Shown here in pieces: positions 3,151-31,585 of a stretch of DNA of 55,954 nucleotides. Below the pieces are notes generated by a model. That model worked only from the letters and a program-made list of their open reading frames with translations, had not been told where the DNA came from and made no database searches. A program made the position numbers and the translations under genes. The stretch's first letter is position 1. Every line of letters starts with the position of its first letter. This DNA is from Octopus bimaculoides (Eukaryota), in assembly GCF_001194135.2 (NCBI RefSeq), contig NC_068982.1:129938071-129994024 (forward strand). Direction: 5' to 3'.

Positions 3151-3220
3151 ATGATGGCTGTGAATACAGTAGTCTTTACATTCGGACTTCTCATGCTCAG
3201 CTTCCAAGTGGTAGTAGCAA
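3151..3220 (+). CDS. Gene A (Ly6/uPAR three-finger, quiver/sleepless-like, GPI-anchored), coding exon 1: signal peptide
   Basis: ATG at 3151 encodes MMAVNTVVFTFGLLMLSFQVVVA, a hydrophobic signal peptide ending V-V-A. It is followed by the phase-1 donor A|GTAAGT at 3221 and joins exon 2 in frame (AAG, Lys). Confidence 0.85.
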
Positions 3221-3498
3221 GTAAGTGTAAATGTAGAGTGCATTAATTATTCCTCAATACTGATTTCGACAATTCCTCTTATTTGTTGAATCATATATGT
3301 ATGTATATAGATCNNNNNNNNNNNNNNNNNNNNNNNNNNNNNNNNNNNNNNNNNNNNNNNNNNNNNNNNNNNNNNNNNNNNNNNNNNNNNNNNNNNNNNN
3401 NNNNNNNNNNNNNNNNNNNNNNNNNNNNNNTAATGTTACCTTAGTGTTTGAGAGCTACTATAATATTTTGCACTCGTATATAAGGATATCACCGTATG

Positions 3499-3529
<31 letters not shown>

Positions 3530-3854
3530 GCATGTCTTTTCTTCTCTTTCATTTTAGAGTAAATTTTGATCGGCCACCGACTGCTAAGTCGGAGGCCGAT
3601 CAAGCAAGATTGTCAAGAAAAGTATCTTTTTTAACCATCATCTATTAAATCTCAAGAAGGTCTTGCAGATTTTCATTGCCCCAGATATCGTGATCATTCG
3701 TAGTGTATGAATTAAGGATTTACGTTCTCTCTCCGAGATACCAAGTTCAACTAAACTTTATTCTCTAGACGGGTTCGTATGTATCCTCTTGCTTCAATAA
3801 TAATATGTATGTTTGCATGTCTGCATATTTATATGTATGTTTATAATATATATC

Positions 3855-4090
3855 ATATCAGGCCACGACTAACTCAATAGCACCACCTGGAAAAGTCTTT
3901 TAGTTAATTAGTTCAGGATACCATAGACCACTCAAGCAGAGAGTTGTTGTTGGTTGAGATGTATCCAGGTGTAGGTGGTTTATCCGGTATTTCCTGGAGG
4001 AATTTGTCCAGGTACCGTTTGAAAGTTGTGGGATCTTTTTCTACTTTAATTTCTTTCGGGATAACAACATTGAAAAGTGCAGGACCATTT
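3855..4090 (-). mobile_element. 5'-truncated CR1/L2-type LINE 3' end (ORF2 C-terminus plus 3' UTR)
   Basis: Minus-strand translation GPALFNVVIPKEIKVEKDPTTFKRYLDKFLQEIPDKPPTPGYISTNNNSLLEW* matches the typical post-RT tail (GPxLFNxLP..FKxxLDxFL..IPDxP..GY). It is embedded in TA/TATG repeats. Confidence 0.7.
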
Positions 4091-4399
4091 ATATATATAT
4101 ATATATATAATATAAATTGATATAATATAATATATATATGTATGTTTATAATATGCATATATCATATCATATCATATCATATGTATGTATGTATGTGTGT
4201 ATGTATGTATGTATGTGTGTATTATAATGGAATAGTTAGTATAAAGCATTGTGTGGAGTATATTTTATAAAATTCGTGAGTAAGGCCGGAACAATGCGAA
4301 ATAAATCCAGGGCAAATCACAAGAAAACAGGCATATGAATTAATGGTGACTTACCTTGCATTCAGTATTCCAGAGTTATGAACCCTCTTCAGGAATTAG

Positions 4400-4590
4400 C
4401 CGCTAGCACACTAGGAATACTGCTTAGCGGCATTTCGTCCATCTTTATATTCTGAATTCAAATTCCGCTTAAGTTGACTTTGTCTTTCATCTTTTCGGAG
4501 TCGATAAAATAAGTACTAGTTGAACCCTGGGGTTGATGTTATTGACTTACTCCCTTCCCCGAACTTGCTCATCTTGTACCAAAATTTCAA
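4400..4590 (+). mobile_element. SINE, family 2 (core GTTCTGAGTTCAAATTCCGCC..GACTTTGCCTTTCATCCTTTCGGGGTCGATAAA)
   Basis: Shares the family core with more than 10 other copies in the window. Ends are approximate. Confidence 0.6.
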
Positions 4591-7186
4591 ACCGATATTT
4601 TGAAATCGTTTTAAATAAGGAAGGTCTTGCATGATAGACGTATTTCCTATTATATATTACACAGACCTGAATGGTACTTATTAAATGATTTCAAGATATC
4701 ATTATTTGGTTTTCAAGAACGACGTATTGGCATTTAGGAAATCAACTGAATGATATACACATTGAGTGGCTGAATATTCCACTCACATATATAATCTTAA
4801 TGTGATTCTCATGTATAATCACTTTTGGCACAAGATGGAGTATATCTTCCGATTACCGCTGCAGTCAAACCGATGAATTTCTATGCAAATTCCCTCAAAA
4901 TTTCGAGTCAAACTCCGGCAATGGCTAAAGGCATTTGTCTCCAATACCGTGTACTTAAATGGAACCCACGAACTCAGGGTTGCATTTCGGACTTCTTAAC
5001 CATTAAGCAATATTAAAAGAAAGAAGCAATTTATACAAGCACTGAAAGTGAGATCATCAGTTGCATGATATTTTGTCGTTAGAGGATTATGTATTGTGAT
5101 GTTCATGCCTTTTCTATTATATTAGTGGAATATATGTATGAAGTACTATCGCTCTCTTAATCTCTCTCTCTCTCTCCACTCCACCTTATTATAAGCATAC
5201 ATGCACACATATAATCTAGAACTAAATTTGGTGTCGAATAACAAAATTGTTGTTCGGATGCTTGCGCGCGTATGTTTGAGGCATTGTGTTTAAAACGCAA
5301 TGCCTCAAACTGGCTGAATCTTGTTTAGGATTATTAATATTAATTATTCATGTAACCGTATTTCGTCCATCTTTACCTTCTGAGCACAAATACCCAGAAG
5401 TCGATTTTTGCGTTTCATTCTTTCGGGGTGGAGCAATTAAGTACCAGTTGATAAGATACAGGTATTTTTTTCTTTAGAACAAATTCTTTGTTGACCAGTG
5501 TTCTTCTTATCGTAGTTTACAAATCCAAGCATGAAAACGTTACTCAACTTTGGAGTTTTGGAGACAGACACCTTATTTTCACCCCACCCCCACACAAACA
5601 CCCCCCACACAAACACCCCCCACACAAACACACACACACACACATACACACTAAAATACGCATAAAGTAAATACATGCAGATAAATATATTAATATAACA
5701 CATTTTTAAAAATACTAAAAAAAAAAATACAATCAATGAAGAATCAAAAGAAACATTAAGATGATACGTGTTTATTGTATTAGGTACTTTTGTTTATTCA
5801 GAAACCTACAATGAAATTAGGTATTTCTGTTTATTTAGAAACCTAAAATGAACAGGTCAGACGCTAAATATAAATTTTACAGGGTACAACCCTAAAGTTG
5901 ACACCGCTCCGCTAAACGCAGAAAATTTCTGTCTCGCTATTGGCTAAAAGTACCCAGTTTTTTTCGATTTTTAAACCTCTGTAACTTTTTTCTCCATTTT
6001 TTTCTTCACATCATACTTTCAAAGCAATGAGACTGGAAGGCTACATTATTATAGCCGATTTTCAGATTTTTTACTTCCTTTCAAAAAAATGCATATTTTG
6101 CGAATGAAAAAAAATTAGATCCCGAACCGCTAATTAACGGGGACGTAAACATACCAGCATCAGTTGTCAAGCAATGGTGGTGGGGACAAACACAGACACA
6201 CAGACACAGACACACACAACAGACACACATGCAGACACACACACACACACTCTCTCTCCCGCACACACAAAATTCAATTGTTTGCTCTTTCGCGATTAAA
6301 AACATTAATCTTGATTAAAAAATAACTGGAGAATGGAAGCTACGTTACTGAAGTGTTTCTAAAAGTCTTTATTGGTGTAATTGAAATACTTATTATTAGT
6401 AATGAAACTGTTATCTCCAGTTGGCCACCTGCTATTANNNNNNNNNNNNNNNNNNNNNNNNNNNNNNNNNNNNNNNNNNNNNNNNNNNNNNNNNNNNNNN
6501 NNNNNNNNNNNNNNNNNNNNNNNNNNNNNNNNNNNNNNNNNNNNNNNNNNNNNNNNNNNNNNNNNNNNNNNNNNNNNNNNNNNNNNNNNNNNNNNNNNNN
6601 NNNNNNNNNNNNNNNNNNNNNNNNNNNNNNNNNNNNNNNNNNNNNNNNNNNNNNNNNNNNNATATATACACACATACACACACATGCGCGCGTACACACA
6701 AAGACACACAGACACACACACACACACTCTCTCTCCCGCACACACAAAATTCAATTGTTTGCTCTTTCGCGATTAAAAACATTAATCTTGATTAAAAAAT
6801 AACTGGAGAATGGAAGCTACGTTACTGAAGTGTTTCTAAAAGTCTTTATTGGTGTAATTGAAATACTTATTATTAGTAATGAAACTGTTATCTCCAGTTG
6901 GCCACCTGCTATTAAGTGATTACTTCAATATCCCGAACCAGCGAAGAAAATGAACCTCGATGAAGCGTCTTGACTAGTTACTTGACTAGGTAGCAATAAG
7001 TGCTAAATTTCTCTCATATCACAATATATTCTCTGCAAAGAGGGAAGAATATATTTAAGGAAAAGGTGACATGGGCGAAGGTGGAATGTCTTTGAATACA
7101 AGTTTGCATGAACAGGACTGATTTGGTCTAGCAACACAGCATCAACAATTAATACCACTAATTAGAGTTCTGGTGTTTGTTTCTAG

Positions 7187-7360
7187 AGGATAGTGAAAAC
7201 TTTACCAAACAATGCTTCTCTTGCCAAAGTATGCTGGGAAACGGGCAGAAGAATGAAAACTGTCCTGGTGATGGAAAGCTGAAAACGTTGGCGACGATCT
7301 ACAGAGAAAATTGTACAGAAGGAGTATGTCTTACCAGAACTATAGTACAACAGAAAGGCG
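7187..7360 (+). CDS. Gene A coding exon 2: LU domain Cys1-Cys5
   Basis: Acceptor tttgtttctag|, donor |gtaagt, 174 nt, phase 1-1. Translation: (K)DSENFTKQCFSCQSMLGNGQKNENCPGDGKLKTLATIYRENCTEGVCLTRTIVQQKG. Confidence 0.92.
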
Positions 7361-7397
7361 GTAAGTATTGCTTTCAATATTAATTATGGTTCTAGAG

Positions 7398-7914
7398 CAG
7401 GGTTGGGGAAACTTTTAAGTGCGGCAGGCAAAAATTTCCAAAGATAAAGGTCTGTGGGCTAATTTTATATTTGTGTAAATCTTGTATATATTTATGTATA
7501 ATTCGATATACATTAATAAAGATAAGTTTAACACGTTAAATTAACGCGTAACATCTTCATTAACACCGCCACTGAATTTATGACGTTTGTATTAATTATG
7601 AGGTATTCTATATTTTCCAGCTTGAGTGTAGTTGGGTCTCAAGGGGGTGGTATAAACCTATCAATATGTGTTTTATAGTGCAAACAGAATTTCCATTCAA
7701 ATAGCAATTACCGGACGATTTTCTGTTTGAGTTTAACCGTTTTAAGCCGAAGTGGAAACGCGACCTATGTCGCAAGAGGCGTACGAATATTGTATAAATT
7801 TTATAATTGAAAAATTGACTATATTCTGTACATACGAATATTCCAGCCTGTGGGTGCAATAAAATGGGCTTGTGGGCGCAATTGCGCCCGCGGGCGGGGG
7901 TTTCCCCACCCCTG
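7398..7914. mobile_element. Non-autonomous hAT (Charlie-like) DNA transposon / MITE
   Basis: Terminal inverted repeats CAGGGTTGGGGAAAC (7398-7412) and GTTTCCCCACCCCTG (7900-7914) match at 14/15. The left flank TTCTAGAG fits the NTCTAGAN Charlie target. The right target-site copy is not recognisable. Confidence 0.6.
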
Positions 7915-8172
7915 GATGGAGCTTGATTGTTTCCTGTACAGATATCTAAATGTATCTGTACATAGCTCCTGTCTATGTAACGTAAAACAGATGAAAAATA
8001 CATTGTCTGCTGTAATTTTCCCGGGGCGGCATTACTCATTATGTGGAAGATTTGAAGAGTCTATGACTATCTCTGGAACATAAATGATGTATGTTCCCAG
8101 CGTAAACGAAATCGGATGAAAAATATTGATTTTTAAGCGAGATCAAAAGCCTGCGCGCGCGCACACACACAC

Positions 8173-8212
<40 letters not shown>

Positions 8213-8217
8213 CAAAC

Positions 8218-8365
8218 AACGGCATTTCGTCCGACTCGTACTTAGTTCAAATTCCATCAAGGTCGAATTTGCTTTCGGGGCGCTAAAATAAGTACCAATT
8301 GAGCACTGGGAACGATGTAATCGATTAGCACCTTTCCCTTAAAATTTTTGGTTATAGTAGAAACG
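8218..8365 (+). mobile_element. SINE family 2, partial copy
   Basis: CGGCATTTCGTC..GTTCAAATTCC..AAGGTCGAATTTGC..AAGTACCAATTGAGCACTGGG matches the family core. Confidence 0.55.
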
Positions 8366-9191: not shown

Positions 9192-9320
9192 TGGTGGCCC
9201 GAGGATGTTCAAAGCACATATATAAGTTTCCAAAACTGCTTCCAGAAGAGGGCTGTTATAAATATTACATGGACGTGATTTGTTTTTGTAGAAAGCATCT
9301 TTGCAATAGGATGGCTCTAG
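9192..9320 (+). CDS. Gene A coding exon 3: LU domain Cys6-Cys10
   Basis: Acceptor atcttcacag|, donor |gtaagt, 129 nt, phase 1-1. Translation: (V)VARGCSKHIYKFPKLLPEEGCYKYYMDVICFCRKHLCNRMAL, containing the RGC and CxCxxxxCN hallmarks of LU/QVR domains. Confidence 0.93.
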
Positions 9321-9554: not shown

Positions 9555-12500
9555 CCTATGTACTTTTAATTCTTATATTTCAAGCAGTATGTATTTTGCT
9601 CATCTTTAGGTATCAAATTTATACTACGTACAGTTGTATGCACTGAAAAAGGAAGCACTCAACCCAAATTCTTACTGTAAACTAAGACAGCTTAATTTGC
9701 CTTTACTGTACTGACGTCTTTCGACAGTGCAGTTTCTCACCAGTTTTCTCGAATTCTGCTATATATAAAGAGACAACAAAGATAATGTTAACAGTCTGGA
9801 ACATATTCAAATAAATTGTCATAGAAGTGTGGACATTAAATGGGTTATTTTTGCACTGTCGCTTCGCCAATGTTTACATTGTATTCTCGTGTCACATATC
9901 CAATTTGACCAAAATTCCTTCTTTAAGATATTTTCTGATAATGACGAAATCATTATGGAGACAAGTTAATGGCTTTCAAACAATGTTAGTAACGAATTCC
10001 AAGAATGTGTCCGAGCAGACGCTCACAGGTCTTCTGTAAATTCTCCTCAGACTCTTGCTTCTTAAGCTTTTCTTAAGTTTGTTGGTTGAGTTGATGCAGT
10101 ATGACCAAGTATCAAAAAAGTTCGCATCTCAATCACAAGGTTCTGGGTTCGATCTTAATGACTGACTTCTTGGGCAAGCGTCTTTTACTATAGCCTGGAG
10201 TCGATCCAGGCCCGGAATTTGTAGTGAAATTGGGATGAGGGAAACTCTGCAGATGCCTGTCGGGTAGATTGTGCTAGTAATTCAAACGTTCAGCTTTGTC
10301 ACACACTGTGTTGGACTGACTCAGTTCAAGAATCATTTCAAGGGCACACACGCCTGTACAATACCCCACTGACACATTCAATGAGCGGTAGTTCATTTGA
10401 TCGAACAACTAAATATTCATCACCCAAACCGACGGAAAACAATTGAAGTCAGCTGAGATATTTTGCTTAGATTTTTTTGTAATTTTTCCTATAGTTATAT
10501 TTGATGTAAATCTTTGCAAGCATACAAGCGAAATTTAAAGAATTGGGTTACCAAATAAAAATGATCCTTGATATATTATCAATTAATATAAGATGACCGA
10601 AGATGTACGTTTGATCACTCGACTGCTTAGATCAAATCGCCACACATATAGGGTTTCTTCTAACGATGCTCAAAAACCCCTTACATTTTATAAGAAAAAG
10701 AGCAGGATAGTTGTGAGAGGACTTTCTCAAAGGTGTTAGTGATATAAGTAAAGTTGAGTGTTTTCCATCGGGAATAGGAATGGTAACCGTGTTGTAGACT
10801 CGCATCTTTGGGAACTCCGTTCGTACTCTATAGCATTCACTACCTTGTGACACATTTCCCTTATTCGATACCACCCAGTAGCGATTAAATAACATTTTCT
10901 AAGTTTACACACACAAGCATGCAAAGAACAACTAAAGAAACACAGACAAGAAGCAAATGTATAGATACAGCCTTCTTCTTCCTACCATAAACAACAATCA
11001 AGAACTACAAAAAAAAAAAAAAAGGACAAAGAAAAAAGGGAAAAGATTTACGTAAAACTGAAGGTATCCTGATCTTGCTTGAGAATGCTATCATTCTTTC
11101 GAAGGAAATTCACCAAACATGAACTTCATACATAAAATTCCAATTTTACCAAAGTAAACTAAACCACACATTCTTCCTTTATGCCTATCAAAACAGACAG
11201 GTTGTTTAACAAAATAGTACACAATTTTCTTAGTTCTAGTTTAAACTTCTAACGGCAGTTTGACTGGTGAAAATGTCATATAAACCTCAGTGATTTGTGG
11301 ATTCATCGTTGGAGATTTTATGAAAGGTACATGAGCCCGATCAAGCTCTTTCCCTTTCAGTCTATTTTGTTGCAGCACAAATCGAAAGTACGAGTTATGT
11401 CTTAAGCGGTAAACGAAACGTGATGCAGATTTGGCTCTCCCAGTAATTACCATAATTTCATAGAACTCGCACTTGAACTGATCAAAAGGACATAGTCAAT
11501 ATTTCAAGCCGAGAAAATTACAATTTAAGTATTTTATTTGTTTGTTTGTTTTTCAGTTTAACATAAGTAAAACAACTATATTAGTTATATTCCGTATGTT
11601 TTAATTCAATTCTGTTATCGATTTGGATTTTCAATTCAGTTTTACCATTTTCAGTTCAATTCAATCCCGATTTCACAAAAAGTTTTAATTCTTGTTTTAC
11701 ACACAAGGCGATGAAACCTTTGTTTTAAATTCAAACTAAAATTACAGCTAAAATATATCAATAAAATATAAATAAAAATAATAAATGAAAACGAAGTTAG
11801 ATCAAGTTTTATTTAATTTAACTAAAAATTTTGTTTTCTATTCGAATTTCACCCTAACTTTTGAAAACATACAGTTTAATCAGCTTCTAGATTTCAATTA
11901 AAATCTCAGAAACGAAACTGAAAACTGCAACACGAAAAGGTTTGAATCTCTATTCCTCGATTAAAACCATGTTGCTGTCAGCTAATAATGTTTCATGGTT
12001 GACACCTCAGTATTCCACTTATCTTTCATTTTCGATATCGTAAGACATTTGTTTCAATACACATATACATGAAGTTGTTCTCCACTGGCGAAATACAACA
12101 GCAATTAACATATTCATATTCGAATCCGTCAGAACATATTAAGATTGAATAAGTGTCATCGTCCTGATTCTCGTTGTTCAGCGTGCACTTGTTAATTTTA
12201 TGTCAGTTGGCAGATATCAGCATGCATCAGCAACTAATTTGTTTGCTGAAGTTATAAACAAGTGTCCAAAACTCTTCTTAGATTCAGTAGTCAGGGGTAG
12301 CTTTGCTTGAGGAGACACATTAAGGTCAAAAGACTGGATGTCCCAAAGTCCCCTTACCCTAATGAATCTCGTGTTATAAGCACGAATTCGTTTGAGAGAA
12401 GCTGTTCCCCGATGCCGAAATAGATCAGCGATTAGCATATTCATGTTCGAATCTCCCGGAACGTATTAAGAAAATGCATGTCATCGCTGATACATACATA

Positions 12501-12691
12501 CATACATACATACATACATACACGTACGCGTATATACATACACGTGCGCGTATATACATGCACACATATTTATACACATATGCACACACATACAATAACG
12601 AAGTCTACAATGGCATTCCAATGAACATAGTGGTCAATGGGATTTATTTTCATTTCTACTGTTTTGATTTTTATCCTTCTTTTCTTCTCAG

Positions 12692-12843
12692 GAAAGCCAA
12701 AAAACAAGGAGTTAGACTATTTGGAATTAGAAAAGTTGAAAAACGCATCTGCAGTACATAAACTACCAGTCACTTTATTTACGTTTATATGGCTATATTT
12801 GCTGATCGGGATCATATTGGATTACCACCTAAGACAACAATAG
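12692..12843 (+). CDS. Gene A coding exon 4: short stalk and GPI-signal-like hydrophobic tail
   Basis: Strong acceptor ccttcttttcttctcag|, phase 1. Translation: (G)KPKNKELDYLELEKLKNASAVHKLPVTLFTFIWLYLLIGIILDYHLRQQ*. Small residues N-A-S-A precede the hydrophobic stretch. Spliced CDS is 70+174+129+152 = 525 nt, 174 aa. Confidence 0.88.
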
Positions 12844-12866
12844 TTTGGTAAAGAAGGAGGAGGATA

Positions 12867-13015
12867 AATAAAATATATGAAGAAAGAGAGATACCCAACA
12901 TCTACCAAAGTAATAATCTTGAAGAAATCTATTCTATAATGGATTCCTATTCCTTGGTATGTTTTGCTTTCAGAAATAAGACTTCGCCACCGTTATTCAT
13001 TGCTAAAGAAATAAA
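12867..13015 (+). terminator. Candidate polyadenylation signals of gene A
   Basis: AATAAA at 12867-12872 and 13010-13015, downstream of the stop. Such hexamers are common in AT-rich DNA. Confidence 0.3.
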
Positions 13016-13174
13016 TGATGTCAAAATTGGTGGAAGTTTTATCTTATCTTTTATCTAGTTCTATATTTAAGAGATGAGGAATTATTTACATTATTTACAT
13101 TTGACAGATATTTGTCCTCATTTTGTTTGTTGTTAACACAACGTTTCGGCAGATATACACGCGCGCAAGCGCGA

Positions 13175-13340
13175 CTGGTTTTCACATACTTTCCATGAAG
13201 GAAATGCACTAAGAAGGCATTTGTCGGCCTTTGGCTATAATGGAAGATACTTGCTGAAGGTGCTGCGTTGTGGGACTGAACGCCAAACCACGTGGTTGCA
13301 AAGTGAGCTTCTTAACTGTACAGTCATGCTCATACTGCCA
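13175..13340 (-). mobile_element. SINE family 1, 5' portion
   Basis: Reverse complement of the tRNA-like head shared with 14218-14695 and 30040-30433. Confidence 0.6.
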
Positions 13341-13544
13341 AATTCCTAGAATTTGAGAACTGGGCAAAATAATTACCATACTAACTAAACCAGTATTTTT
13401 TAAACTTACCTTGAAAGATCATAAGAAAACCTCATCAACCTACCCTTGTTTCGTTACAACTTTCCATATGACTTCAATTATCACTGTATTCATAAACTTT
13501 ATCCCGACGAATACATGGTGTCTTCAACAATATCTTCTTTTACA

Positions 13545-13885
13545 AACACTAGGGTAAAGACCCCCTTCGGTCATGAATGACCATAAGATTGCACCAAGAA
13601 AGTTCCCCTCCAAAGTTGATTATGGCAAAGTTGGTTATGGAAGATCAGAAATCACCCATGCATATCAGCCGCCCCTCTCCACGCTAGCGATATTATCCAA
13701 GGGAAAGGCAAAAGCTGATACAACTTGCCACCAGTGACATCGCAACTCATTTCTACATCTGAGTGATCTGGAGCAGCGTGAAAAAAAGTGACTTGCTCAA
13801 GAACACAATATAGAGTTCGGTCGGGGAATCGAACTCACTACCTCAAACCTGTAAACCCAACGCTGTTACCGCTGATCCATGTACC
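13545..13885 (-). mobile_element. tRNA-derived SINE related to family 3
   Basis: The minus strand carries a B-box-like GAGTTCGATTCCC and the body TTCTTGAGCAAG..CACGCTGCTCCAG..CACTCAG shared with 17500-17815 and 35175-35436. Confidence 0.55.
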
Positions 13886-14217
13886 TAAGCAAAACATTCG
13901 GTTTAGCCACGCATTGTCTGCCGCTCTATGTTTAAATACCCTGTAAACAGTAAGATATTCTTAAAACGTCTCCTACCACGAATAAAGCACATTCATAAGA
14001 TCGCTATACCTTCCACTTAGTCCAGACAAACAAAAGGAGCATACTTTGATAGCATCATCATCAATAGTCTCATTAGCATCTTCTTCCTAGAGATTGAGCT
14101 GAGGTGCTCGCTCCATTTATAAGTACAAAGAAACAGAAACTATAGCTTTAAATTGAGACTACTCTTTTCATCAGCGGCCTCAGTCAGACCAATAACTTTG
14201 TAAGAAAATATCTAACT

Positions 14218-14379
14218 TGCACAGGTATGGCTGTGTGATAAGAAGCTTGCTTCCCAACCACATGGTTCTGGGTTCAGTCCCACTGCGTTGCGCCTTGGGC
14301 AAGTGTCTTCTACTGTAACCTCGGGCCGACCAAAGCTTTGTGAGTGGATTTGGCAGACGGAAACGGAAAGGAGCCTGTC

Positions 14380-14417
<38 letters not shown>

Positions 14418-14695
14418 NNNNNNNNNNNNNNNNNNNNNNNNNNNNNNNNNNNNNNNNNNNNNNNNNNNNNNNNNNNNNNNNNNNNNNNNNNNNNNNNNNN
14501 NNNNNCCCCCCCCCATCACCGTTTGACAACCGGTGTGTTTAAGTCCCCGTAACGTAGCGGTTCGGCAAAAGTGACCGATAGGATAAGTACTAGGCTTACA
14601 AAAAATAAGTCTTGGGGTCGATTTCTTCGACTGAAACCCTTTAAGGTGCTACTCCAGAATGGCCGCAGTCAACTGACTGAAACAAATAAAAGAAT
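14218..14695 (+). mobile_element. SINE family 1, full length, with an internal (TA)n and N gap
   Basis: Head TGGCTGTGTG..GGTTCAGTCCC (Pol III A/B-box-like), body GGGCAAGTGTCTTCTACT..GGGCCGACCAAAGC, tail ATGGCCGCAGTCAACTGACTGAAACAAATAAAAG. Colinear with 30040-30433. Confidence 0.8.
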
Positions 14696-15696
14696 GGAAA
14701 TTAACGCAATATGTCTGGATTGTCACACTGGATTGTCACACTTACATAAACCACTGCATGTTGGAGTGTATAACAGACGTATCATCTTGATATGTAGATC
14801 GTACTTAGTTGTTTGACCGATTCCCTACTTAAACATAGCTTTGATCAGGGATGGTCGGTGATCAACAACAGTTCATAGAACATTAGAAAATAAAAGTACT
14901 GCTTTAACACATCAACTGGTTAGTAAAGCATTGCTCCAGTTCATAGATCACTGAGAAGCTACCGAAGACAGAGGGTATGAGACATCCTATTTCAAGTAAT
15001 GGGTTATATCTAATTCTTTTGTGGTGTGTTTGCATATAAGTTTACAAATTGGTCAGAGGTAAAATGAAGTGTTTGGGGCTTCCGAAGGACATTTGTGTGT
15101 GATTCAAGGGTACTGAGATAACTCCATTCTACAACTTGGCATACACACACACACACACATTCATTCACATATACACACACACTCATTCACATATACACAC
15201 ACACTCCCTGTGTGTGTGTGTGTGCATATGTGTGTGTGTGTGTGTGTGTGCGGGCGCGTGTGTGTGTTAGAAATTCTTAGTATTTACCATAATAACTTTG
15301 AGAGGGTCTGATGAAAGGATAATTTATTTCATTAACCGATTACTTAATTGATTATTGTTTGGATTTACAGGGTTTTTAAGTACTAACCAATGTGTAAGGT
15401 GATGAAATGATCTGTCTAGCTATCGAAACGATCGAAACCTTAATTAAAATTATATAACATTATTGTTTTCATACTTTCGTTTACTTACTTTTATATTCTG
15501 TGATAAATGCACCAACTGACTGGTTGGTGAATTTCCTCAGATTTACAGTTGGAAACCAAAATTAAAAATAAAAAGCAGTGTCCTCTCCTTTCCTCAGGAA
15601 GATTTATATCATTTATATCTGTTAATAAATAAATAAAGAGATAAAAAAAAACATCTTCTTACTCATTTCTGTATAGTTATTAAGATATATTGCCAG

Positions 15697-15922
15697 GGCG
15701 GTGAGCTGGCAGAATCGTTAGCACGCCGCGCGAAATACTTAGCGGTATTCCGTCTGCCGCAACGTTCTGAGTTCAAATTCCGCCGAGGTCGACTTCGACT
15801 TCGACTTTGCCTTTCATTCTTCTGGGGTTGATGAAATAAGTACCAGTTATGCACTGGGGTCGACATAATCGACTCGTCCCCTTTCCCACCAAAATTTTCG
15901 AGGTCTTGTGTCTAGAGTAGAA
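15697..15922 (+). mobile_element. SINE family 2, near full length
   Basis: GGCGGTGAGCTGGCAGAATCGTTAGCACGCC..GTTCTGAGTTCAAATTCCGCCGAGGTCGAC..CTAGAGTAGAAA. Confidence 0.8.
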
Positions 15923-16667
15923 ATAATTATTAAGGTATATGACTGAAACAACGAAGAGTATATTCCACATAATAGCCGATATAATGTTGATTTCACAAGT
16001 CATGCTCACATCGTATATACAGAGGGGGAGAGAATAGAAGAGACCTACAACGAGAAAGTTAACATAAGGGGAAGATATATGATGAAATCTTTTGTAGTCA
16101 TGACCATCCTGTCTTTTTGTATAAATAGGATTACATTATATTATGTTTCCTTCCTTTTTTTTTTAGATACGCAAAGATGTGACTTGAAGTTTTGACAGAT
16201 ATTTCTAGCATAGAGCCGGAAATCGGCGTCCACGATCGAAATTACGTTTGCATTCAAAATTGCAACACAGATGTTCTACCACAGTTTCCTATAAAACTGT
16301 AATTCGCTCCTGATAAAAAAAAAAAAATAAATAAATAAGTAAATAAAAAACAAATTTCCCCTATCTTGGTTGTCGAAGGCTTCCTAGTTGGTGTCATGAC
16401 AGAGTGCTGATCTGAAGTGAATGTCTTGCAGTTCTTTTTCTTATTTCCTTGTACGTTTAAACTTCGCTAAGGTTATCTCTGTCTTTCACCTCATCGGCAG
16501 AGTCTGTACAATATGCTCTAGGAATGTAATGTAAGTCGAATATCAAATACTAAATGCCACAAATGTAGTGTTGTGTTACTTGAAAGAAATCATTATTAGC
16601 TCTAACCACTTCAAAGGCAACTAAGTATTTGAGTTCATTTATGCTACTCTTTTTTATAGTCCTGAAT

Positions 16668-16850
16668 GGTAGATTGGCGGAATCAGCAAAGCGTTGTATA
16701 AAATACTTTGTTATGTTTGCTTTGGCTCTTAACGTTCTGAGTTCAAATCCCACCGAGGTTCACCTTGTCTTTCGTCCCTTTCGGGGTCGATAACAAAGTA
16801 TCAGGGCCAACGGTATCGAATTATCCTCGACCTTGTGTCTAAATCAGAAA
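16668..16850 (+). mobile_element. SINE family 2, diverged copy
   Basis: Same core (ACGTTCTGAGTTCAAATCCCACCGAGG..TTTCGGGGTCGATAA). Confidence 0.6.
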
Positions 16851-16899
16851 CAATATTTGCATCAGCGTTTGGGGAAAAATTATGTTTTTTTTTTTTTTC

Positions 16900-17103
16900 A
16901 CTCCAGGAACAAGGCTCGAAATTTTGAGGAGAGGGCCAGTCGATTAGATCGACTCCAGTACGCAAATAGCACTTAATTTATCGACCCCGAAAGGGATGAA
17001 AGGCAAAGTTGACATCGGAGAAATTTGAACTCGGAACGTAAAGACATACGAAATACCACTAAGCAGTTCGACCGGCGTGCTAACATCTCTGCCAGCTCGC
17101 CGT
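16900..17103 (-). mobile_element. SINE family 2, inverted copy
   Basis: Reverse complement of the family core, ending CTGCCAGCTCGCCG on the plus strand. Confidence 0.75.
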
Positions 17104-17815: not shown

Positions 17816-18081
17816 AAGAACTAGTTTCAACTCTCAAGGTGAAGCTAAATATTTTTGAAGGTATTGTCAAAGGAGAAAGAGTAGCTCCGTGATACTTTTC
17901 AGGGCCTCTAAGATTGGTAGGAGGGAAGGAAGTTATTCTCAGACCGAAGTCCTTGCTCGAATTCTTGTAATAAAGTGAACTCCTCTGAAGGTAAAGAAGG
18001 ATCAATTAGTGTTCTTAAACTGGGCTATGATTTATAGCAGTTTACGTTTATTTCACTCCTAGTTTTGATGGACGCAACAAT

Positions 18082-18234
18082 CAGTAGCCTTACTAGCGAG
18101 GGCGATGTGGGATAGTCCACCCCGGGTGACACTTTTATGTGGGATGCACTTTTGATGCTGTATAAACCTGTATTGGAGGCGGGGTGGTAAATTCAAGGGC
18201 TGCCTCAGCTGGCACACACTCTAGCTACACTATT
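18082..18234. mobile_element. Degenerate MITE resembling the 9419-9554 type
   Basis: Ends CAGTAGCCTTACTAG...CTAGCTACACTATT are imperfect inverted repeats. No target-site duplication is recognisable. Confidence 0.35.
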
Positions 18235-18293
18235 AGCAAGGCTACACCACTTACGTTATTACCACAGTCGAGAAAGGCATGAAGAGACACAAT

Positions 18294-18317
18294 TTTATTC
18301 TACTCAAAATATTTATT
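18294..18317 (-). terminator. Candidate polyadenylation signals of gene B
   Basis: Two minus-strand AATAAA (plus-strand TTTATT at 18294-18299 and 18312-18317), about 570-590 nt past the stop. Confidence 0.3.
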
Positions 18318-18706
18318 GCTTAAATCAGAAATCAGTTTGTCTTAGAATTGGTTGAGCTCCAGAAGGCAACAGATAAGATCTTGATGTGCCGAGACTGAGA
18401 AGCCAGTTTCGATTCTTGATTGAAGCAATTACACTTCATTTCCACTGTTAATGTATAAGGCATTTTAGTCTAGTCGCAAGAAACCAATATTTTGTCAGTT
18501 TTCGGTGCTGAGTTAAAATACTCTTACTGGGCTAAATATTCGTTATGACTTCAACTTCAACCTCAGCAACTGGAATAATGTTACTGGTAATCAGTTTAGT
18601 TCCATTAGTAATGTGTGAAACTGGTTAAGTGGTATACATGAGTGAGCGTAAAATTTTCAAATTAGTCCAGCTTTGCAGCCGAGCAGGTTCTACCACACAC
18701 ACACGC

Positions 18707-18752
<46 letters not shown>

Positions 18753-18887
18753 TCTAAAAGCGAGCGAAAAGTACACTAGAAACAACTTACCCCATTCTCA
18801 CTACACGAAAGGAAAAAAAAATGAATTAGAAAAAGCCCCTTTTTACAATTAACAACTGCTTGGGTTAAAGATTAGACTGATTTTAAA

Positions 18888-19318
18888 TTAGTAGTTTTTA
18901 AATAACTGAAGTCTCACACAGAGAGATACCATCAATGTGACATAAACTAATAATAGCGAAGGTAAACATTGACGAGACATCGATTCTGTGCAAGATTCCG
19001 AACCGTTTATGCCTCTAGTCGTTCTTTCAGATTCCCAAGCGATCTTATTCACTACAAAAGTACTGGAGCTACTGTTTGATATGGGAATGTTCAAATATGC
19101 TTCTGGACCACCTGAAAGGTTTTTGTGATCTTTTAGTTGTGATGGTACTCGTTTCAAAAACCATTGGGGTTTTACTGGATGTGTAGTTCGGGTTATGTAA
19201 TTGTTTCTCTCTGTTGGTTCATTGGCTTTGTTATTTGGAAACGGCAGCACTTTACTTTCTTCCGTTCTTTTCGGAATTATTTCTTCCTCCTCCTCAGTAG
19301 GAGGATTTCTTAGCTCAT
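18888..19318 (-). CDS. Gene B (Ly6/uPAR three-finger, quiver-like) coding exon 4: long stalk and hydrophobic C-terminal tail
   Basis: Acceptor tattctttttttcag|, phase 1, 431 nt, open to the stop. Translation: (D)ELRNPPTEEEEEIIPKR...INGSESCTESMSRQCLPSLLLVYVTLMVSLCVRLQLFKNY*. Spliced CDS is 79+153+129+431 = 792 nt, 263 aa. Confidence 0.88.
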
Positions 19319-22210
19319 CTGAAAAAAAGAATAGAAATTCAGAATAATTATGTAAAATGTTGACAATCTCCAGAACAAATTTACAAATGATGCAGAACAA
19401 CAGAGAATGTGTTAAAGCAAACTGTTTCGGAAAATTTATATAATCTTATTAGAATTTATTTCCATTTCATTAGCCCGGTCGGTACGTGGTTTCAGTTCGC
19501 TTTTAAAATCTTTTCACTCCAATGACATGCTTAGGAAAGTTGTGAATGTCATAACAGCTCAGTTCTTCTTGAAAACAAAGGACCTTGTTCCTTATCAAAA
19601 CGGCTCCAATGTTAAACTAAAAGTAAGTTAAGAATGCGATCCAGTTTCGATTCTCGTTCTAATCATTTAGCTTCATTAATGTACGAATGCCATGAATAAT
19701 TCTTCCCATATTCCCCGACAAGTTTTTGGTTTTGGCTTTATAAAAGAACTCCACATTGTTTGTAACTAAACATTGTAAATTCTATCACATATTATAAAGT
19801 ATTATATCAATCACCTGAAGGACAGTCAGATGGCTAAATCAGGATTAAATTACTTTCTTCAAAGAAATATCCTAACCTAAACATAAAATCTCATCTCCCT
19901 TCATAACACACAAACATATTTCACGAATTATATTAAATGACTATTTATATTTTCACTTCATGTTTTACGTTAAATCTTACAGTGATTTGTTTCGTTGTTC
20001 ATTCGCTGATAGAATAAATAAATCCTTGCCTGGCATGTATAAAAGTCATTCCAGTCAACTATATTTCTTCCCTACAAATCAGCAACCTTGAGCCAAGACT
20101 AGATTAACTGGTGTTCTTAGCATTGTCCAACAATGATGCAATATCGACCCTAACATTTGTCCACCTGACAAGACGTTAAGTCATAATAAGTGCTTAGTGG
20201 TAAATAATAGATTTAAAAATTCACCTTACGGCGATGCACCACAACTTTATTATTAAATAAAACCAATTTTTCTTGTTTTAATTTTATTAATTAAACTAAA
20301 TAACACTAAATAATAAAAGCAAATTATTTACTTATTACTAGGTCAACAGCTAAAATGCCAATTTTCAACACATTTTATTCAATAGAGAAAATAAACAATT
20401 TAATATGGAAAGATCGGCATTAGAAAAGAAAACTATGCGAGGCTCCCCACACCCTCGCTTTCCTTGATGTCTTGAGCACGTGCTTTCACCCGGTTTTATG
20501 TGGGTATAATAACCATTTAAATATAATATTTCAAAACATTTTAACAAACATTTTTCAGTAATACATATACGTACACAAGCATACCCGTGTCTTCAAGAAT
20601 ACTGACAATCTTATTAATGATACAAAATAGTATATCAACACAATGGGAGAAACCATTGATAAATGTCAGCAATTTAGTAAATATATGTGCATACACAGAA
20701 CTAATGCACTTGAAGAATCAGATACGGTTGTAACGCCTTTTTTTTTTTTTTTACATAAATTTTGAGAGCGATCGGGTTCATTTTTAGTATTCTCGTTTGT
20801 GAGAGCAGTCGAGTTTATTTCAGATAATCTCATTTTAAGAATCATCTCTGGCTAATCGTTGAAAGGACGTTGGTGTTGCTTTGGCGGAGGTTTGCGCTTT
20901 CTGCGTGCTCTTGTTTTATTATTGTTATTGGTATTGTTGATGTTGATGTTCTCACCATCATCATTATTGTTTTAGTCTCACCAATTATTCCATAAATTTA
21001 TTTTAATGCTTTTAAATTTTAGTTTGCTTTAATGCCAAAGTTNNNNNNNNNNNNNNNNNNNNNNNNNNNNNNNNNNNNNNNNNNNNNNNNNNNNNNNNNN
21101 NNNNNNNNNNNNNNNNNNNNNNNNNNNNNNNNNNNNNNNNNNNNNNNNNNNNNNNNNNNNNNNNNNNNNNNNNNNNNNNNNNNNNNNNNNNNNNNNNNNN
21201 NNNNNNNNNNNNNNNNNNNNNNNNNNNNNNNNNNNNNNNTATATATATATATATATTCGAAGTAGCTGTGGGGAAAAAATTGCGAAACATTGTCCTTGAT
21301 CAGAGGTGTTCTTAAAAAACAACATATTAGATAAAACAGTTCGAAGTAGATTATTCCCGAAAATACGAGATGGTTATAGATGGAAGTCTTCGATCATATG
21401 TCTGCTTGGTCAAGGTCGACCTTGGGCTAAATAAAAACAACAATATTGTAATATTCTGACGGGCCAATGAGGGAATTTCTATGCGATCACTCGACTTGTT
21501 ATAAATTGCTAAATATCCCTCTAATGATACCCTTAGGTGAAAAAGAACATGCTTGACAATAGAGTCAATGATATTGAAAATGACAGGATGGTCACAGATG
21601 GAATGACTCCGATTATAAGTTTGCTTAATCAGAGCTGATCAGAGGCTAAGCAACGTCATATGAAACTCACCAGGTCATGTGGTATTTCCTGTAAATTGAT
21701 GCGTTTCGTGCCGCTACGCAGAAAAAACCCCCTTTATTCAGCATTGACGGTAAGCTAATGAATTGCTTACTAATTACATAATGGATGAGCAGACTCAGTA
21801 GAGTGACGAACAAAACAACGTCATGTTTAATTACTTAACTTTACGTTTTAAGTTGAAATTATACTGGAGTCATTTTTGTCTTTTATCCTTCAGTGGTCCA
21901 TAAAAATTAGCACCAACAGAATACTGGAATCAACACAATCGACAAAACCATGCCCGATTATTTTAGACGTCTCGAAATCAATTTTACATTAATTGATTTG
22001 CTCAGACCATTATACTATATATCCCAGTAGTACCTTTGTACTATTGACTGATTTGACTAACTGTATGTGTAAGTGTTTTAACACAATTGCTCGTGGCCGA
22101 ATATAAACCATCGATGTTTCAATCAGTAGGCTTTCTATTCGATCAGCAGACACTGTCACATGATTTATATACTCTGTCAGACTCTATGCGATATTTAAAA
22201 AAAAACTTAC

Positions 22211-22339
22211 CCATCGAAGCTCTGTTGCAGAGGTTTGTATCACAGAAGCACCATTGTTCGTTTGAATAGCTGCGACAACTTTTGAGTGGTAAATGAGGTG
22301 GTAGGTCAGGATGTAAGTCGGTGCAGCCACGAAATATAA
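22211..22339 (-). CDS. Gene B coding exon 3: LU domain Cys6-Cys10
   Basis: Acceptor tctcattgcag|, donor |gtaagt, 129 nt, phase 1-1. Translation: (V)IFRGCTDLHPDLPPHLPLKSCRSYSNEQWCFCDTNLCNRASM. Confidence 0.93.
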
Positions 22340-22608
22340 CTGCAATGAGATATGCAGAGAAGATTTATTTAAAAATCATTATATAGTGGCTGTTGTTTTG
22401 TTTTCTCTTAATGTTGCTGATTAACGGCGAATTTTTTTTAAACACAGGTACAAGGCATCAGACTAGAAGTGGTATAGCTGAATGGTACTTTATTTTATCG
22501 CTTCCCACTCCCACAAAAGATTTGGGATCAAAAGTAACTTTGGGCGAGATTTGAACTCAAAATGTCAAAATTTCGTATTTTAACCTTTTGTCAATCCACT
22601 GCTTATTG

Positions 22609-22611
<3 letters not shown>

Positions 22612-22682
<71 letters not shown>
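22612..22682. repeat. (CA)n microsatellite between SINE fragments
   Basis: Read directly. Confidence 0.95.
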
Positions 22683-22684
<2 letters not shown>

Positions 22685-23177
22685 CATGTGAACTGGCACA
22701 ATCGGTAGCACGTCTGACAAAATGTAAAGTGACATTTTTCGCCTTTTTACGTTCTGAGTTCAATCCCTTCCTCCTGCTGGTCTTCACCCCTACAACTAAA
22801 AGACTGGCGTCCCGTACAGGGGAATGTTGTGATCTCGGTCACATGCGCTATTCTGTATAATGGTAGAAACGGTCGTATCGAAATAAATATTATCACTTTA
22901 TCTAATCATGTTCCATGTTTAAATCGCGTTGACTTCAATTTTACTTTCCATTCTTCTGGAGTGGATAAGATAAAAACTAGTCAACTGTCTCTTTAAATGT
23001 TGATACGTTATATTGGTTTTGTGTCATTGTAAGTTCTCAAAGTAAATATTTATACTGATATCTTCTATTACATTATTATTTTATTTCTAAATATTTACAT
23101 TCAAACTTTACATATGCTATATTGGTTTTGTGCCAATATAAAGTATGAATGTTTTCAGTTATACTAAACGGAATAAG

Positions 23178-24418: not shown

Positions 24419-24571
24419 CGTTCGGATTTTGCTTTGTTACCCGAACGAAACAACTGCCATAGCAAGCTTCAGAATTGGTGAGATACGGAGCCGTAATACT
24501 TTGTGGCGGACAATAACTTTTTGATGTCTGCTGTTCGCCGCTGTAGCACACATAACATCTTTTACCCAGTC
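24419..24571 (-). CDS. Gene B coding exon 2: LU domain Cys1-Cys5
   Basis: Acceptor ctatatattccag|, donor |gtaagt, 153 nt, phase 1-1. Translation: (G)LGKRCYVCYSGEQQTSKSYCPPQSITAPYLTNSEACYGSCFVRVTKQNPN. Confidence 0.92.
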
Positions 24572-26592: not shown

Positions 26593-26938
26593 GTTGGCAT
26601 TCCGTCGCGGGTTCTAGTTGATCCGATCAACGGAACAGCCTGCTCGTGGCTGAGCACTCCACCGACACGTGTACCCTTAACGTAGTTCTCGAGAATATTC
26701 AGCGTGACACAGTGTGTCAAGGCTGACCCTTTGAATTACAGGCACAACAGAAACAGGAAGTAAGAGAAAGTTGTGGTGGAAGAGTACAACAGGGTTCGCC
26801 ACCATCCCCTGCCGGAGCCTCGTGGAGCTTTAGGTGTTTTCGCTGAATAAACACTCACAACGCCCGGTCTGGGAATCGAAACCGCGATCCTATGACCGCG
26901 AGTCCGCTGCCTTAACCACTGGGCCATTGCGCCTCCAC
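26593..26938 (-). mobile_element. SINE family 3, full length, with 13-bp target-site duplication
   Basis: Minus-strand head GTGGAGGCGCAATGGCCCAGTGGTT..GGTTTCGATTCCC (A/B boxes). AAAATGTTTATTT flanks it at 26580-26592 and 26939-26951. Confidence 0.88.
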
Positions 26939-27631: not shown

Positions 27632-27697
27632 TAACCCTAACCCTAACCTTAACCCTAACCCTAACCCTAGGGTTAGGGTTAGGGTTAGGGTTAGGGT
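27632..27697. repeat. Interstitial telomere-type repeat arranged as a palindrome, (CCCTAA)n then (TTAGGG)n
   Basis: About six TAACCC units switch at CCCT|AGGG (27668/27669) to about five TTAGGG units, which run into an N gap. Confidence 0.9.
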
Positions 27698-28264
27698 NNN
27701 NNNNNNNNNNNNNNNNNNNNNNNNNNNNNNNNNNNNNNNNNNNNNNNNNNNNNNNNNNNNNNNNNNNNNNNNNNNNNNNNNNNNNNNNNNNNNNNNNNNN
27801 NNNNNNNNNNNNNNNNNNNNNNNNNNNNNNNNNNNNNNNNNNNNNNNNNNNNNNNNNNNNNNNNNNNNNNNNNNNNNNNNNNNNNNNNNNNNNNNNNNNN
27901 NNNNNNNNNNNNNNNNNNNNNNNNNNNNNNNNNNNNNNNNNNNNNNNNNNNNNNNNNNNNNNNNNNNNNNNNNNNNNNNNNNNNNNNNNNNNNNNNNNNN
28001 NNNNNNNNNNNNNNNNNNNNNNNNNNNNNNNNNNNNNNNNNNNNNNNNNNNNNNNNNNNNNNNNNNNNNNNNNNNNNNNNNNNNNNNNNNNNNNNNNNNN
28101 NNNNNNNNNNNNNNNNNNNNNNNNNNNNNNNNNNNNNNNNNNNNNNNNNNNNNNNNNNNNNNNNNNNNNNNNNNNNNNNNNNNNNNNNNNNNNNNNNNNN
28201 NNNNNNNNNNNNNNNNNNNNNNNNNNNNNNNNNNNNNNNNNNNNNNNNNNNNNNNNNNNNNNNN

Positions 28265-28304
<40 letters not shown>

Positions 28305-28833: not shown

Positions 28834-29224
28834 TGTTGTTTTTGTTGGCACTCCGTCGCTTACGACGTCGAAGGTTCCAGTTGATCCGATCAACGGAACA
28901 GCCTGCTCGTGAAATTAACGTGCAAGTGGCTGAGCACTCCACAGACACGTGTACCCTTAACGTAATTCTCGGGGAGATTCAGCGTGACACAGTGTGACAA
29001 GGCTGACCTTTTGAATTACAGGCACAGCAGAAACAGGAAGTAAGAGTGAGAGAAAGTTGTGGTGAAAGAGTACAGCTGGGTTCGCCACCATCCCCTGCCG
29101 GAGCCTCGTGGAACTTTAGGTGTTTTCGCTCAATAAACACTCACAACGCCCGGTCTGGGAATCGAAACCACGATCCTATGACCGCGAGTCCGCTGCCCTA
29201 ACCATTGGGCCATTGCGCCTCCAC
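28834..29224 (-). mobile_element. SINE family 3, full length, with 10-bp target-site duplication
   Basis: Nearly identical to 26593-26938 but without that copy's internal deletions. ACTTGTATAT flanks it at 28824-28833 and 29225-29234. Confidence 0.88.
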
Positions 29225-29249
29225 ACTTGTATATAACTAATCCATAAAA

Positions 29250-29297
<48 letters not shown>

Positions 29298-29852: not shown

Positions 29853-29884
<32 letters not shown>

Positions 29885-30039
29885 NNNNNNNNNNNNNNNN
29901 NNNNNNNNNNNNNNNNNNNNNNNNNNNNNNNNNNNNNNNNNNNNNNNNNNNNNNNNNNNNNNNNNNNNNNNNNNNNNNNNNNNNNNNNNNNNNNNNNNNN
30001 NNNNNNNNNNNNNNNNNNNNNNNNNNNNNNNNATATATA

Positions 30040-30433
30040 GGCGCAGCAGTGGCTGTGTGGTAAGTATCTTGCTTACCAACCACATGGTTCCGGGTTCATT
30101 CCCACTGCGTGGCACCTTGGGGCAAGTGTCTTCTACTATAGCCTCGGGCCGACTAAAGCCTTGTGAGTAGATTTGGTAGACGGAAACTGAAAGAAGCCCG
30201 TCGTATATATGTATATATATGTATGTGTATGTATATCTTTGTGTATCTGTGTCCTCCCAACATCGCCTGACAACCGATGGTGATGTGTTTACGTCCCCGT
30301 AACTTAGCGATTCAGCAAAAGACACCGATAAAATAAGTACTAGGCTTACAAAGAATAAGTCTTGGGGTCGATTTGCTCGACTAAAGGTGGTGCTCCTGCA
30401 TGGCCGCAGTCAAATGACTGAATCAAGTAAAAG
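30040..30433 (+). mobile_element. SINE family 1, full length
   Basis: GGCGCAGCAGTGGCTGTGTGGTAAG head with A/B-box-like motifs, internal TA/TG microsatellite, and tail GGCCGCAGTCAAATGACTGAATCAAGTAAAAG. Confidence 0.85.
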
Positions 30434-31212
30434 CGCAAAATATATATGTATGTATGTATGCATGTATGTATGTATATAAAGATCGTAACCCGAAGTGTAT
30501 ATCTTTGCATAACAGATAAATTTTAAAGAAACATCTAGGTGAAAATAAGAAATTACAAATACCATATATTTAAGGAATCTCTAACATACGATATAAAATA
30601 TTTGGTTGATTTATTTCAATATGTAAATGCTTTCTGGTCATATCGTGAGACATATACTGGGATCTCAGAGATTAACAAAATCTGCGTGATTATCTTATGG
30701 GTTTCAAGAAAAATACAAGAGAGCAATCAGATGAGATGTAATTCGGATAAGGATAACAATTTGAATGAAATTTTATTTAGAGTGAAATATCTGTGAAACA
30801 CGTCAATTGTACAGACATTATGTGAAGATCTAGGGATTATCACACGCTTCTATAGCAAGAATTTTAATTAAATTCACCATGAAAATGAAGAAAAAACACG
30901 TTGATTCTAGTTTTTTAAAATTTCTTCCTCTATAGCAGCTGGGTTTTATAAGACAAAAAATTGAAGAAATAAACCCAATTCATAAATTCTAATTACAGAT
31001 AGTATAATTAATTCCACTAATTTGACAAACTGATCAGAACCTTTGGCGTCTTTATTCTAACTCCTGTAGCATTGAATTGTAAATCTGTCGTCTGCTGACA
31101 AAAATAGAAGCAACGAAAATAAACGGGCTGGAGAAAAAGGTGTTCTCTTAAGTAATTTCAGGCATTTCTAGTTTCATTTACTACAAGGCAAAGGGACACG
31201 AATTTACCAGAC

Positions 31213-31327
31213 GATGACAACAACAACAACAACAACTACATCATCATCATCATCATCATCATCGTCATCATCATCATCATCATCAACAACAACAACAACA
31301 ACGATGATTACGATGATGACGACGATG
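31213..31327. repeat. Compound trinucleotide repeat (AAC)n(ATC)n(AAC)n(GAT/GAC)n
   Basis: Read directly. It lies in gene B intron 1 about 180 nt from the signal-exon donor and explains the poly-T/S ORF. Confidence 0.9.
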
Positions 31328-31506
31328 AGTATAAAAAAATTACTATTTCTGAAAGCAGCTACTTTTTTCCTAAATCATCAAAGAAAACAAAACAAAAGGA
31401 AGTATAAGCAACGAAAGTTTGAAGTGAAATTTTAAGTAAAAGGAAAAATTACTTTGAAAAATGCATTCCCTAAAATTTTCTCAATTAAGAAATATAAAAG
31501 ACTTAC

Positions 31507-31585
31507 CTGAAGGTAAAACAAAACTGAATGTAAGCATCAATATAGAAACTGAGAGTGGACGTTGATGATAATCCGTTAAGTCCAT
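31507..31585 (-). CDS. Gene B coding exon 1: start codon and signal peptide
   Basis: ATG at 31585 encodes MDLTDYHQRPLSVSILMLTFSFVLPS, followed by the phase-1 donor CAG|GTAAGT. It joins exon 2 in frame (GGA), so the signal region continues ..LPSGLG before KRC. Confidence 0.82.

Follow-up and report, generated by a model that had tools for sequence, protein, structure and literature searches.

We analysed a stretch of 55,954 nucleotides (nt) of the Octopus bimaculoides genome (assembly GCF_001194135.2, contig NC_068982.1), hereafter called the window. It contains two neighbouring convergent genes: gene A on the plus strand, which is the distal part of LOC106875930, and gene B on the minus strand (LOC106875938). 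Both genes probably encode cell-surface three-finger proteins of the quiver (QVR) subfamily of the Ly6/uPAR superfamily, which would act as membrane-tethered accessory proteins. We put the probability of this reading at roughly 75%. The family is well known, as are its gene clusters and the members with several domains; A and B are uncharacterised RefSeq genes.

The two genes converge with 6,044 nt between their stop codons (12844–18887), in good agreement with the value of about 6 kb in the initial annotation of this DNA. This intergenic spacer is collinear with Octopus sinensis and holds one assembly gap (14418–14505). Each gene has four coding exons, and exon 3 is 129 nt long in both. All six introns are in phase 1; their donor is GTAAGT, and their acceptors are pyrimidine-rich and end in AG. 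The convergent orientation, the four phase-1 coding exons, the 129-nt exon 3, the split of the domain and the cysteine spacing had all been described beforehand and proved exact, coordinates included.

Exon 1 of gene B (31507–31585, minus strand, 79 nt, ATG at 31585) carries the start codon and the signal peptide. Exon 2 (24419–24571, 153 nt) and exon 3 (22211–22339, 129 nt) encode the N-terminal and the C-terminal half of the three-finger domain, respectively. Exon 4 (18888–19318, 431 nt with the stop) encodes 143 amino acids (aa), comprising an acidic Ser/Thr-rich stalk with the motif QWFLKRVP...GGPEAYLN and the hydrophobic tail. Two other candidates for exon 4, near 18858 and 18796, were rejected as microsatellite or chance reading frames; the true exon runs from 19318 to 18888. 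The spliced product of 263 aa is identical, residue for residue, to RefSeq XP_014779742.1 ('uncharacterized protein LOC106875938').

Gene A, as modelled from position 3151, gives a product of 174 aa. Its putative alternative first coding exon (3151–3220, plus strand, 70 nt, ATG at 3151) encodes the signal peptide MMAVNTVVFTFGLLMLSFQVVVA and ends in a phase-1 GTAAGT donor. Exon 2 (7187–7360, 174 nt) is exon 5 of the RefSeq model of LOC106875930 (40322–40495 of the locus extract L001) and encodes the N-terminal half of the domain with cysteines 1–5. Exon 3 (9192–9320, 129 nt) encodes the C-terminal half with cysteines 6–10 and the motif CFCxxxxCN. The last coding exon (12692–12843, 152 nt with the stop) encodes an ELDYL linker, the candidate anchor residues NAS and a 17-residue hydrophobic tail.

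The assignment to the QVR subfamily is carried by the cysteine framework and by profile alignments. The cysteine spacing is alike in A and B (C5-C6 15, C6-C7 15, C7-C8 8, C-F-C, C9-C10 4), and the intron that splits the domain lies at the same place, between QQKG and VVARGC in A and between QNPN and VIFRGC in B. Sequence identity between the A and B domains is 31% (E 2e-12). When 42 domains were aligned, among them A, B and the upstream domain A0 described below, all ten cysteines were invariant, as was the Asn of the terminal CN motif. Both A and B aligned to the Pfam family QVR (PF17064) over profile positions 2–86 of 86. The two-domain protein XP_014779735.2 scored 32.0 bits, above the curated cut-off of 27.3 bits. 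QVR was matched by 36 of the 42 related domains at E ≤0.01, and neither Activin_recp nor UPAR_LY6 was matched by any of them. From the 42-sequence alignment, AlphaFold gave an all-beta model of the B domain, with a predicted local distance difference test (pLDDT) score of 88.1 and a predicted template modelling score of 0.79; for full-length B, with two sequences, the pLDDT was 38.7. Taking the alignments and the model together, membership of A and B in the Ly6/uPAR three-finger superfamily, as QVR-type proteins, is the best reading. The initial annotation had already taken them for three-finger paralogues, and the end-to-end PF17064 alignment, the signal peptides and the hydrophobic C-termini agree with this.

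Both genes devote one exon to the signal peptide, which was recognised by eye as a hydrophobic N-terminus, and two exons to the domain. Near the C-terminus, a hydrophobic stretch of 17 residues follows NAS in A, and one of 17 residues follows GSES in B. In the relatives from Argonauta and Patella, the protein ends in the hydrophobic stretch. Most likely, the C-terminal hydrophobic signal would be swapped for a glycosylphosphatidylinositol (GPI) anchor. A secreted three-finger toxin was also considered and discarded on account of the C-terminal hydrophobic segment in both A and B.

Several observations weigh against the reading of A and B as tethered QVR-type proteins. The lone domains scored below the QVR cut-off, with 23.3–25.6 bits for A and 20.9–25.4 bits for B. 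A profile search of the Protein Data Bank sequences gave no match at E ≤1. The structure matches of the B-domain model were weak (E 0.05–0.8, template modelling (TM) score 0.40–0.48) and were receptors of the transforming growth factor beta (TGF-beta) family, not Lynx1 or CD59. In the Octopus A and B tails, the hydrophobic stretch is followed by 7–8 hydrophilic residues and may therefore be a short transmembrane anchor. Furthermore, the use of the exon at 3151 is deduced from conservation only.

The five best structure matches of the B-domain model, and the only ones above chance, were the three-finger ectodomains of ActRIIB, ActRII, ALK3 and ALK5, and an older model of B is labelled 'Activin types I and II receptor domain-containing protein' in UniProt. 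Both would fit B being a membrane-tethered decoy ectodomain, related to activin and bone morphogenetic protein receptors, that binds TGF-beta-family ligands. This is very improbable, since B matches QVR from end to end, whereas the Activin_recp profile was matched by neither A nor B even at E ≤10. Moreover, B has no kinase domain, only a short hydrophobic tail. The structure matches, all with a TM score below 0.5, do not discriminate between the two families because receptor ectodomains and Ly6 domains have the same general fold.

For the QVR-type reading, the wider gene model of A is of importance. Exons 2–4 of A correspond to residues 135–285 of XP_014779735.2 (LOC106875930), and the product of the last exon is 100% identical to the C-terminus of that protein. 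The public model of LOC106875930 has seven coding exons and two three-finger domains, with every boundary in phase 1. Its first domain, A0, and a 51-nt (17-aa) linker exon are located upstream of the window, about 8–23 kb before its start (L001 10001–25560), with the A0 domain exons themselves about 13–14 kb upstream. Domain A would normally be the second of two, preceded by A0 and the linker. A 3.1-kb assembly gap (L001 29986–33135) ends exactly at the window start, and the first domain and the linker of LOC106875930 lie beyond it.

The exon at 3151–3220 is present in no public gene model. Together with about 125 nt upstream and about 65 nt downstream, it forms a block in which about 6 of about 260 aligned positions differ from O. 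sinensis (about 98% identity). The background identity of the surrounding non-coding DNA between the two species is about 86–93%. Of the 23 residues of the signal peptide, 22 are identical in O. sinensis. Neither the exon nor its conserved block was found in the Argonauta locus. Judged by this conservation, the exon probably serves as an alternative first exon that is transcribed from an internal promoter. It could yield a single-domain isoform, and as all exon boundaries are in phase 1, one-domain and two-domain splice forms would both be in frame.

A well-formed signal-peptide exon with a phase-1 donor, about 98% identical with its flanks against a background of about 90%, could also mean that gene A is an independent single-domain gene starting at 3151. 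In that case, two tandem genes would have been joined by read-through in the two-domain public models. We consider this unlikely. A0 lacks a separate exon for an anchor or tail, and its linker exon meets a stop codon when it is left unspliced. The two domains are joined in the models of O. bimaculoides, O. sinensis and Octopus vulgaris, and the Argonauta model has three domains, so the domains are joined in four annotations from four species. On a contig of 1,264 nt assembled from run SRR27666085, both domains are encoded in one uninterrupted reading frame of 303 aa, whose lack of introns suggests an origin from mRNA. Multi-domain relatives are also known from gastropods, and the exon at 3151 was not found in Argonauta. 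From these data, the two-domain A0-A protein is most likely real. The simple two-gene pair of the initial annotation has to be corrected accordingly: A is the second domain of a gene to which four annotations assign two or more domains. In Argonauta hians, the counterpart of A (L003 14980–22195, minus strand, protein P0011) has three three-finger domains, with the A0-type domain duplicated. The whole A. hians locus is about ten times more compact than the Octopus locus.

B consists of one three-finger domain and a conserved stalk of about 115 aa. Its orthologues are XP_036356687.1 in O. sinensis, CAI9718112.1 in O. vulgaris (98% identical) and GAB1597337.1 in A. hians (65% identical overall, 90% in the domain). 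The exon lengths are 79/153/129/431 nt in O. sinensis and 121/153/129/452 nt in Argonauta. Within the stalk, the block ITRTTH..QWFLKRVP..LK.HKN.SGGPEAYLN.P (B residues ~160–200), which includes a dibasic KR, is invariant between Octopus and Argonauta. Neither the stalk nor exon 4 as a whole matched a Pfam family.

An exhaustive search of 1.84 billion representative proteins with the B profile (E ≤0.001) gave 39 matches, all of them within the three-finger domain. No match outside the octopod cluster spans the exon-4 region, and no homologue of the stalk was found outside octopods. The named relatives were from the gastropods Patella, Lottia, Haliotis, Biomphalaria, Arion, Gigantopelta and Candidula, the chiton Liolophura and the annelid Owenia, and there were other Argonauta paralogues. 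None of the 39 matches was an insect protein. The gastropod relatives have one to three three-finger domains per protein, and the intron positions of the octopus domain are common to Patella. An orthologue search had been suggested beforehand for the idea of a cephalopod-specific family; with relatives in gastropods, a chiton and an annelid, this idea has to be dropped.

The order of A0, A and the convergent B is kept in O. sinensis and A. hians, with 6.9 kb and 2.8 kb between the stops, respectively. As the order is common to Octopus and Argonauta, the arrangement is older than the split between them. In a domain-level neighbour-joining tree with 100 bootstrap replicates, the A, A0 and B clades were each supported by 100%. 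A and B were grouped in none of the 100 replicates, and neither were all octopod domains together. A grouped with the C-terminal domains of gastropod proteins, to which it is 43–46% identical, compared to about 31% to B. On this evidence, the A lineage is not cephalopod-specific. B stood alone on a long branch of unstable position, often near annelid proteins, and its identity to sequences outside octopods did not exceed 38%. The pair had been interpreted as an old local inverted duplication. It is old, as the conserved gene order demonstrates, but the tree does not support a direct inverted duplication from A to B within cephalopods.

The closest non-cephalopod relative is a three-domain QVR-like gene of Patella caerulea (10001–17482 of the locus extract L006, JAZGQO010000001.1). 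Directly upstream of it are two intronless Cys-loop receptor genes (1402–2568 and 6248–7399) with Neur_chan_LBD and Neur_chan_memb domains. A convergent gene for a single-domain three-finger protein of 117 aa (18187–19429) follows 0.7 kb downstream of the QVR-like gene and echoes the tail-to-tail layout in octopus.

The ratio of non-synonymous to synonymous substitution rates (dN/dS) between O. bimaculoides and O. sinensis was 0.05 for the B domain and 0.14 for B exon 4. For the A0 domain, the A domain and the A tail, it was 0.37, 0.70 and 0.94, respectively. A and A0 hence evolve faster than B, and the ratio of non-synonymous to synonymous changes differs between A and B (Fisher p = 0.0013, on small counts). 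Because of the small counts, relaxed and positive selection on A are inseparable. Purifying selection on B is strong by these ratios and points to a partner that is fixed and conserved. Pseudogenes or chance reading frames were ruled out by the conservation together with dN/dS.

As to function, the loops of the tethered domain would contact the ectodomain of another membrane protein, situated in the same membrane or encountered in the secretory pathway, and this binding may tune the trafficking or activity of that partner. Both steps are modelled on characterised relatives. In Drosophila, the GPI-anchored QVR/SSS uses loop 2 to bind Shaker and nicotinic receptors (PMC4735452), and the fly Ly6 protein Bero modulates neuronal excitability (PMC10264074). 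As these fly relatives have differing roles, membership of the family leaves the partner unfixed.

By analogy with QVR/SSS, the best-characterised member of the family, A and B might be neuronal or sensory prototoxin-like auxiliary subunits. Their targets would be nicotinic-type receptors of cephalopods, including the chemotactile receptors, or Shaker-type K+ channels, with the loops diverged towards different targets. Mammalian Lynx proteins are likewise modulators of nicotinic receptors (PMC6502960). The strong constraint on B is what would be expected of a subunit with a fixed partner, and the two Cys-loop receptor genes of P. caerulea are 2.6–8.6 kb upstream of the closest non-cephalopod relative. 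That adjacency may, however, be due to chance, because molluscs have very many such receptor genes, and no Cys-loop receptor gene was found in about 110 kb of octopod sequence around the locus. Unrelated roles are also known for QVR-family members (PMC3058042, PMC5627947), and the literature search yielded no paper that ties Ly6 proteins to cephalopod receptors. We therefore regard this specific role as possible but doubtful.

Alternatively, A and B might serve in epithelia or glia as Ly6 proteins for the assembly of septate junctions and the paracellular barrier, like Boudin, Coiled and Crooked of Drosophila. The septate-junction Ly6 proteins of Drosophila are taken to be of the QVR type. The family is widespread among animals with septate junctions, and the purifying selection on B (dN/dS ~0.1) would fit structural housekeeping. 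Several Drosophila Ly6 proteins do have such a role (PMC3058042, PMC5627947). On the other hand, 0 of the 39 profile matches were from insects. A junction role for the octopus pair is unlikely.

More speculative still, B could be an octopod innovation, in which an ancient QVR-type domain was fused to the new conserved stalk as a dedicated co-receptor. It might pair with the expanded nicotinic-derived chemotactile receptors, and A0-A would switch between one-domain and two-domain forms by alternative promoters. We attach a very small probability to this scenario.

The first 22,843 nt of the window were identical (0 mismatches) to the chromosome CM046602.1 of GCA_001194135.2, with position 1 of the window at about 129,938,071. 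The window is AT-rich (~35% GC) and crowded with (CA)n microsatellites. These (CA)n/(TG)n repeats occur throughout, for example at 1593–1858, 8136–8246, 18628–18797, 22560–22838 and 41053–41718, and translate to CVCVCV... runs. Such frames mimic cysteine-rich peptides in a naive scan. The exons were detected by a six-frame scan for cysteine-rich segments, which led to four true exons, and the flanks were then read for the full gene models.

Six N runs are located within the locus, and every one is intronic or intergenic. Besides the one in the spacer, these are 3314–3430 and 6438–6661 in intron 1 of A, 21043–21239 in intron 3 of B, and 27698–28264 and 29885–30032 in intron 1 of B. No reading frame crosses any of them. 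The O. sinensis assembly, itself nearly free of gaps, is collinear with the sequence on either side of each gap, and the same exons are found in the gap-free orthologous loci, which means that no exon is concealed in a gap. The gap at 6438–6661 is flanked by a direct duplicate of about 250 bp with 94% identity (6186–6437 and 6668–6914), which ends 270 bp upstream of exon 2 of A. A single site in O. sinensis (L002 40093–40304) corresponds to both copies, which are probably uncollapsed contig ends and not a genuine repeat.

Two further elements were seen in the window. At 47062–48319 (plus strand), a 156-aa frame with a match to Pfam Exo_endo_phos (28.1 bits) precedes a 273-aa frame without a family match; together they look like a fragment of a retrotransposon lacking long terminal repeats (non-LTR). 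An interspersed repeat is present in three copies on the minus strand (26720–26854, 28982–29140 and 40601–40807), two of them within intron 1 of B. The common reading frame of its copies is ...HEAPAGDGGEP.CTL.PQLSLT..SCFCCACNSKGQP. It has no Pfam match, and many copies occur in O. sinensis.

In flies and mammals, Ly6/quiver proteins are known to regulate epithelial barriers as well as excitability and cholinergic signalling. A search of the literature found no paper that names LOC106875930 or LOC106875938 or links Ly6 proteins with cephalopods; a mention of 'quiver' in a squid atlas referred to software of that name. The locus had been presented as undescribed, yet both genes are already in RefSeq, and UniRef names A 'Protein quiver'. 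The pair is not a new type of system. A and B are reasonable but ordinary candidates for work on expression and on co-expression with channels. What is gained are corrected gene models, the conserved micro-synteny of three domains and the contrast in constraint between A and B. This contrast remains of interest, as do the stalk of B, found only in octopods, and the probable alternative promoter in A.

Compared with known systems, the ectodomains of TGF-beta-family receptors (Activin_recp) would share the three-finger fold with the B domain and are the best matches of its model, although weak ones. They differ in that there is no profile match and that B has no transmembrane kinase. Drosophila QUIVER/SLEEPLESS and the Pfam family QVR resemble the octopus proteins in the 10-cysteine three-finger domain, the terminal CN, the signal peptide and the putative C-terminal hydrophobic anchor signal. 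The octopus domains match the profile over its whole length, with lone domains just under the cut-off. In contrast to the single-domain QUIVER, the octopus A gene has two domains and B has an extra stalk of ~115 aa of no known family, and the nearest relatives of the octopus proteins include no insect protein.

Vertebrate Ly6/uPAR genes are clustered, include multi-domain members (LYPD3, CD177 and PLAUR) and have the signal peptide and the anchor on separate exons (PMC4839075). Lynx1, SLURP and CD59 resemble the octopus pair in their clustered paralogues, signal-peptide exon and two-exon domain, and the vertebrate proteins are GPI-anchored (PMC4839075). The octopus genes differ from them in that an extra exon, the fourth, carries the putative anchor signal and that there is no sequence-level match to any solved structure. 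The QVR-like proteins of other lophotrochozoans include KAK6195931.1 of Patella, XP_009065597.1 of Lottia ('Protein quiver') and those of Haliotis, Biomphalaria, Liolophura and Owenia, none of them of known function. Their identity to octopus B is at most 38%, and the B stalk is absent from them. They have the same cysteine framework as the octopus domains and the same motifs RGC...LPxPLPxxGCY...WCxCxxxxCN, and the linker ELD(A/Y)HL precedes their tail, as in octopus A.

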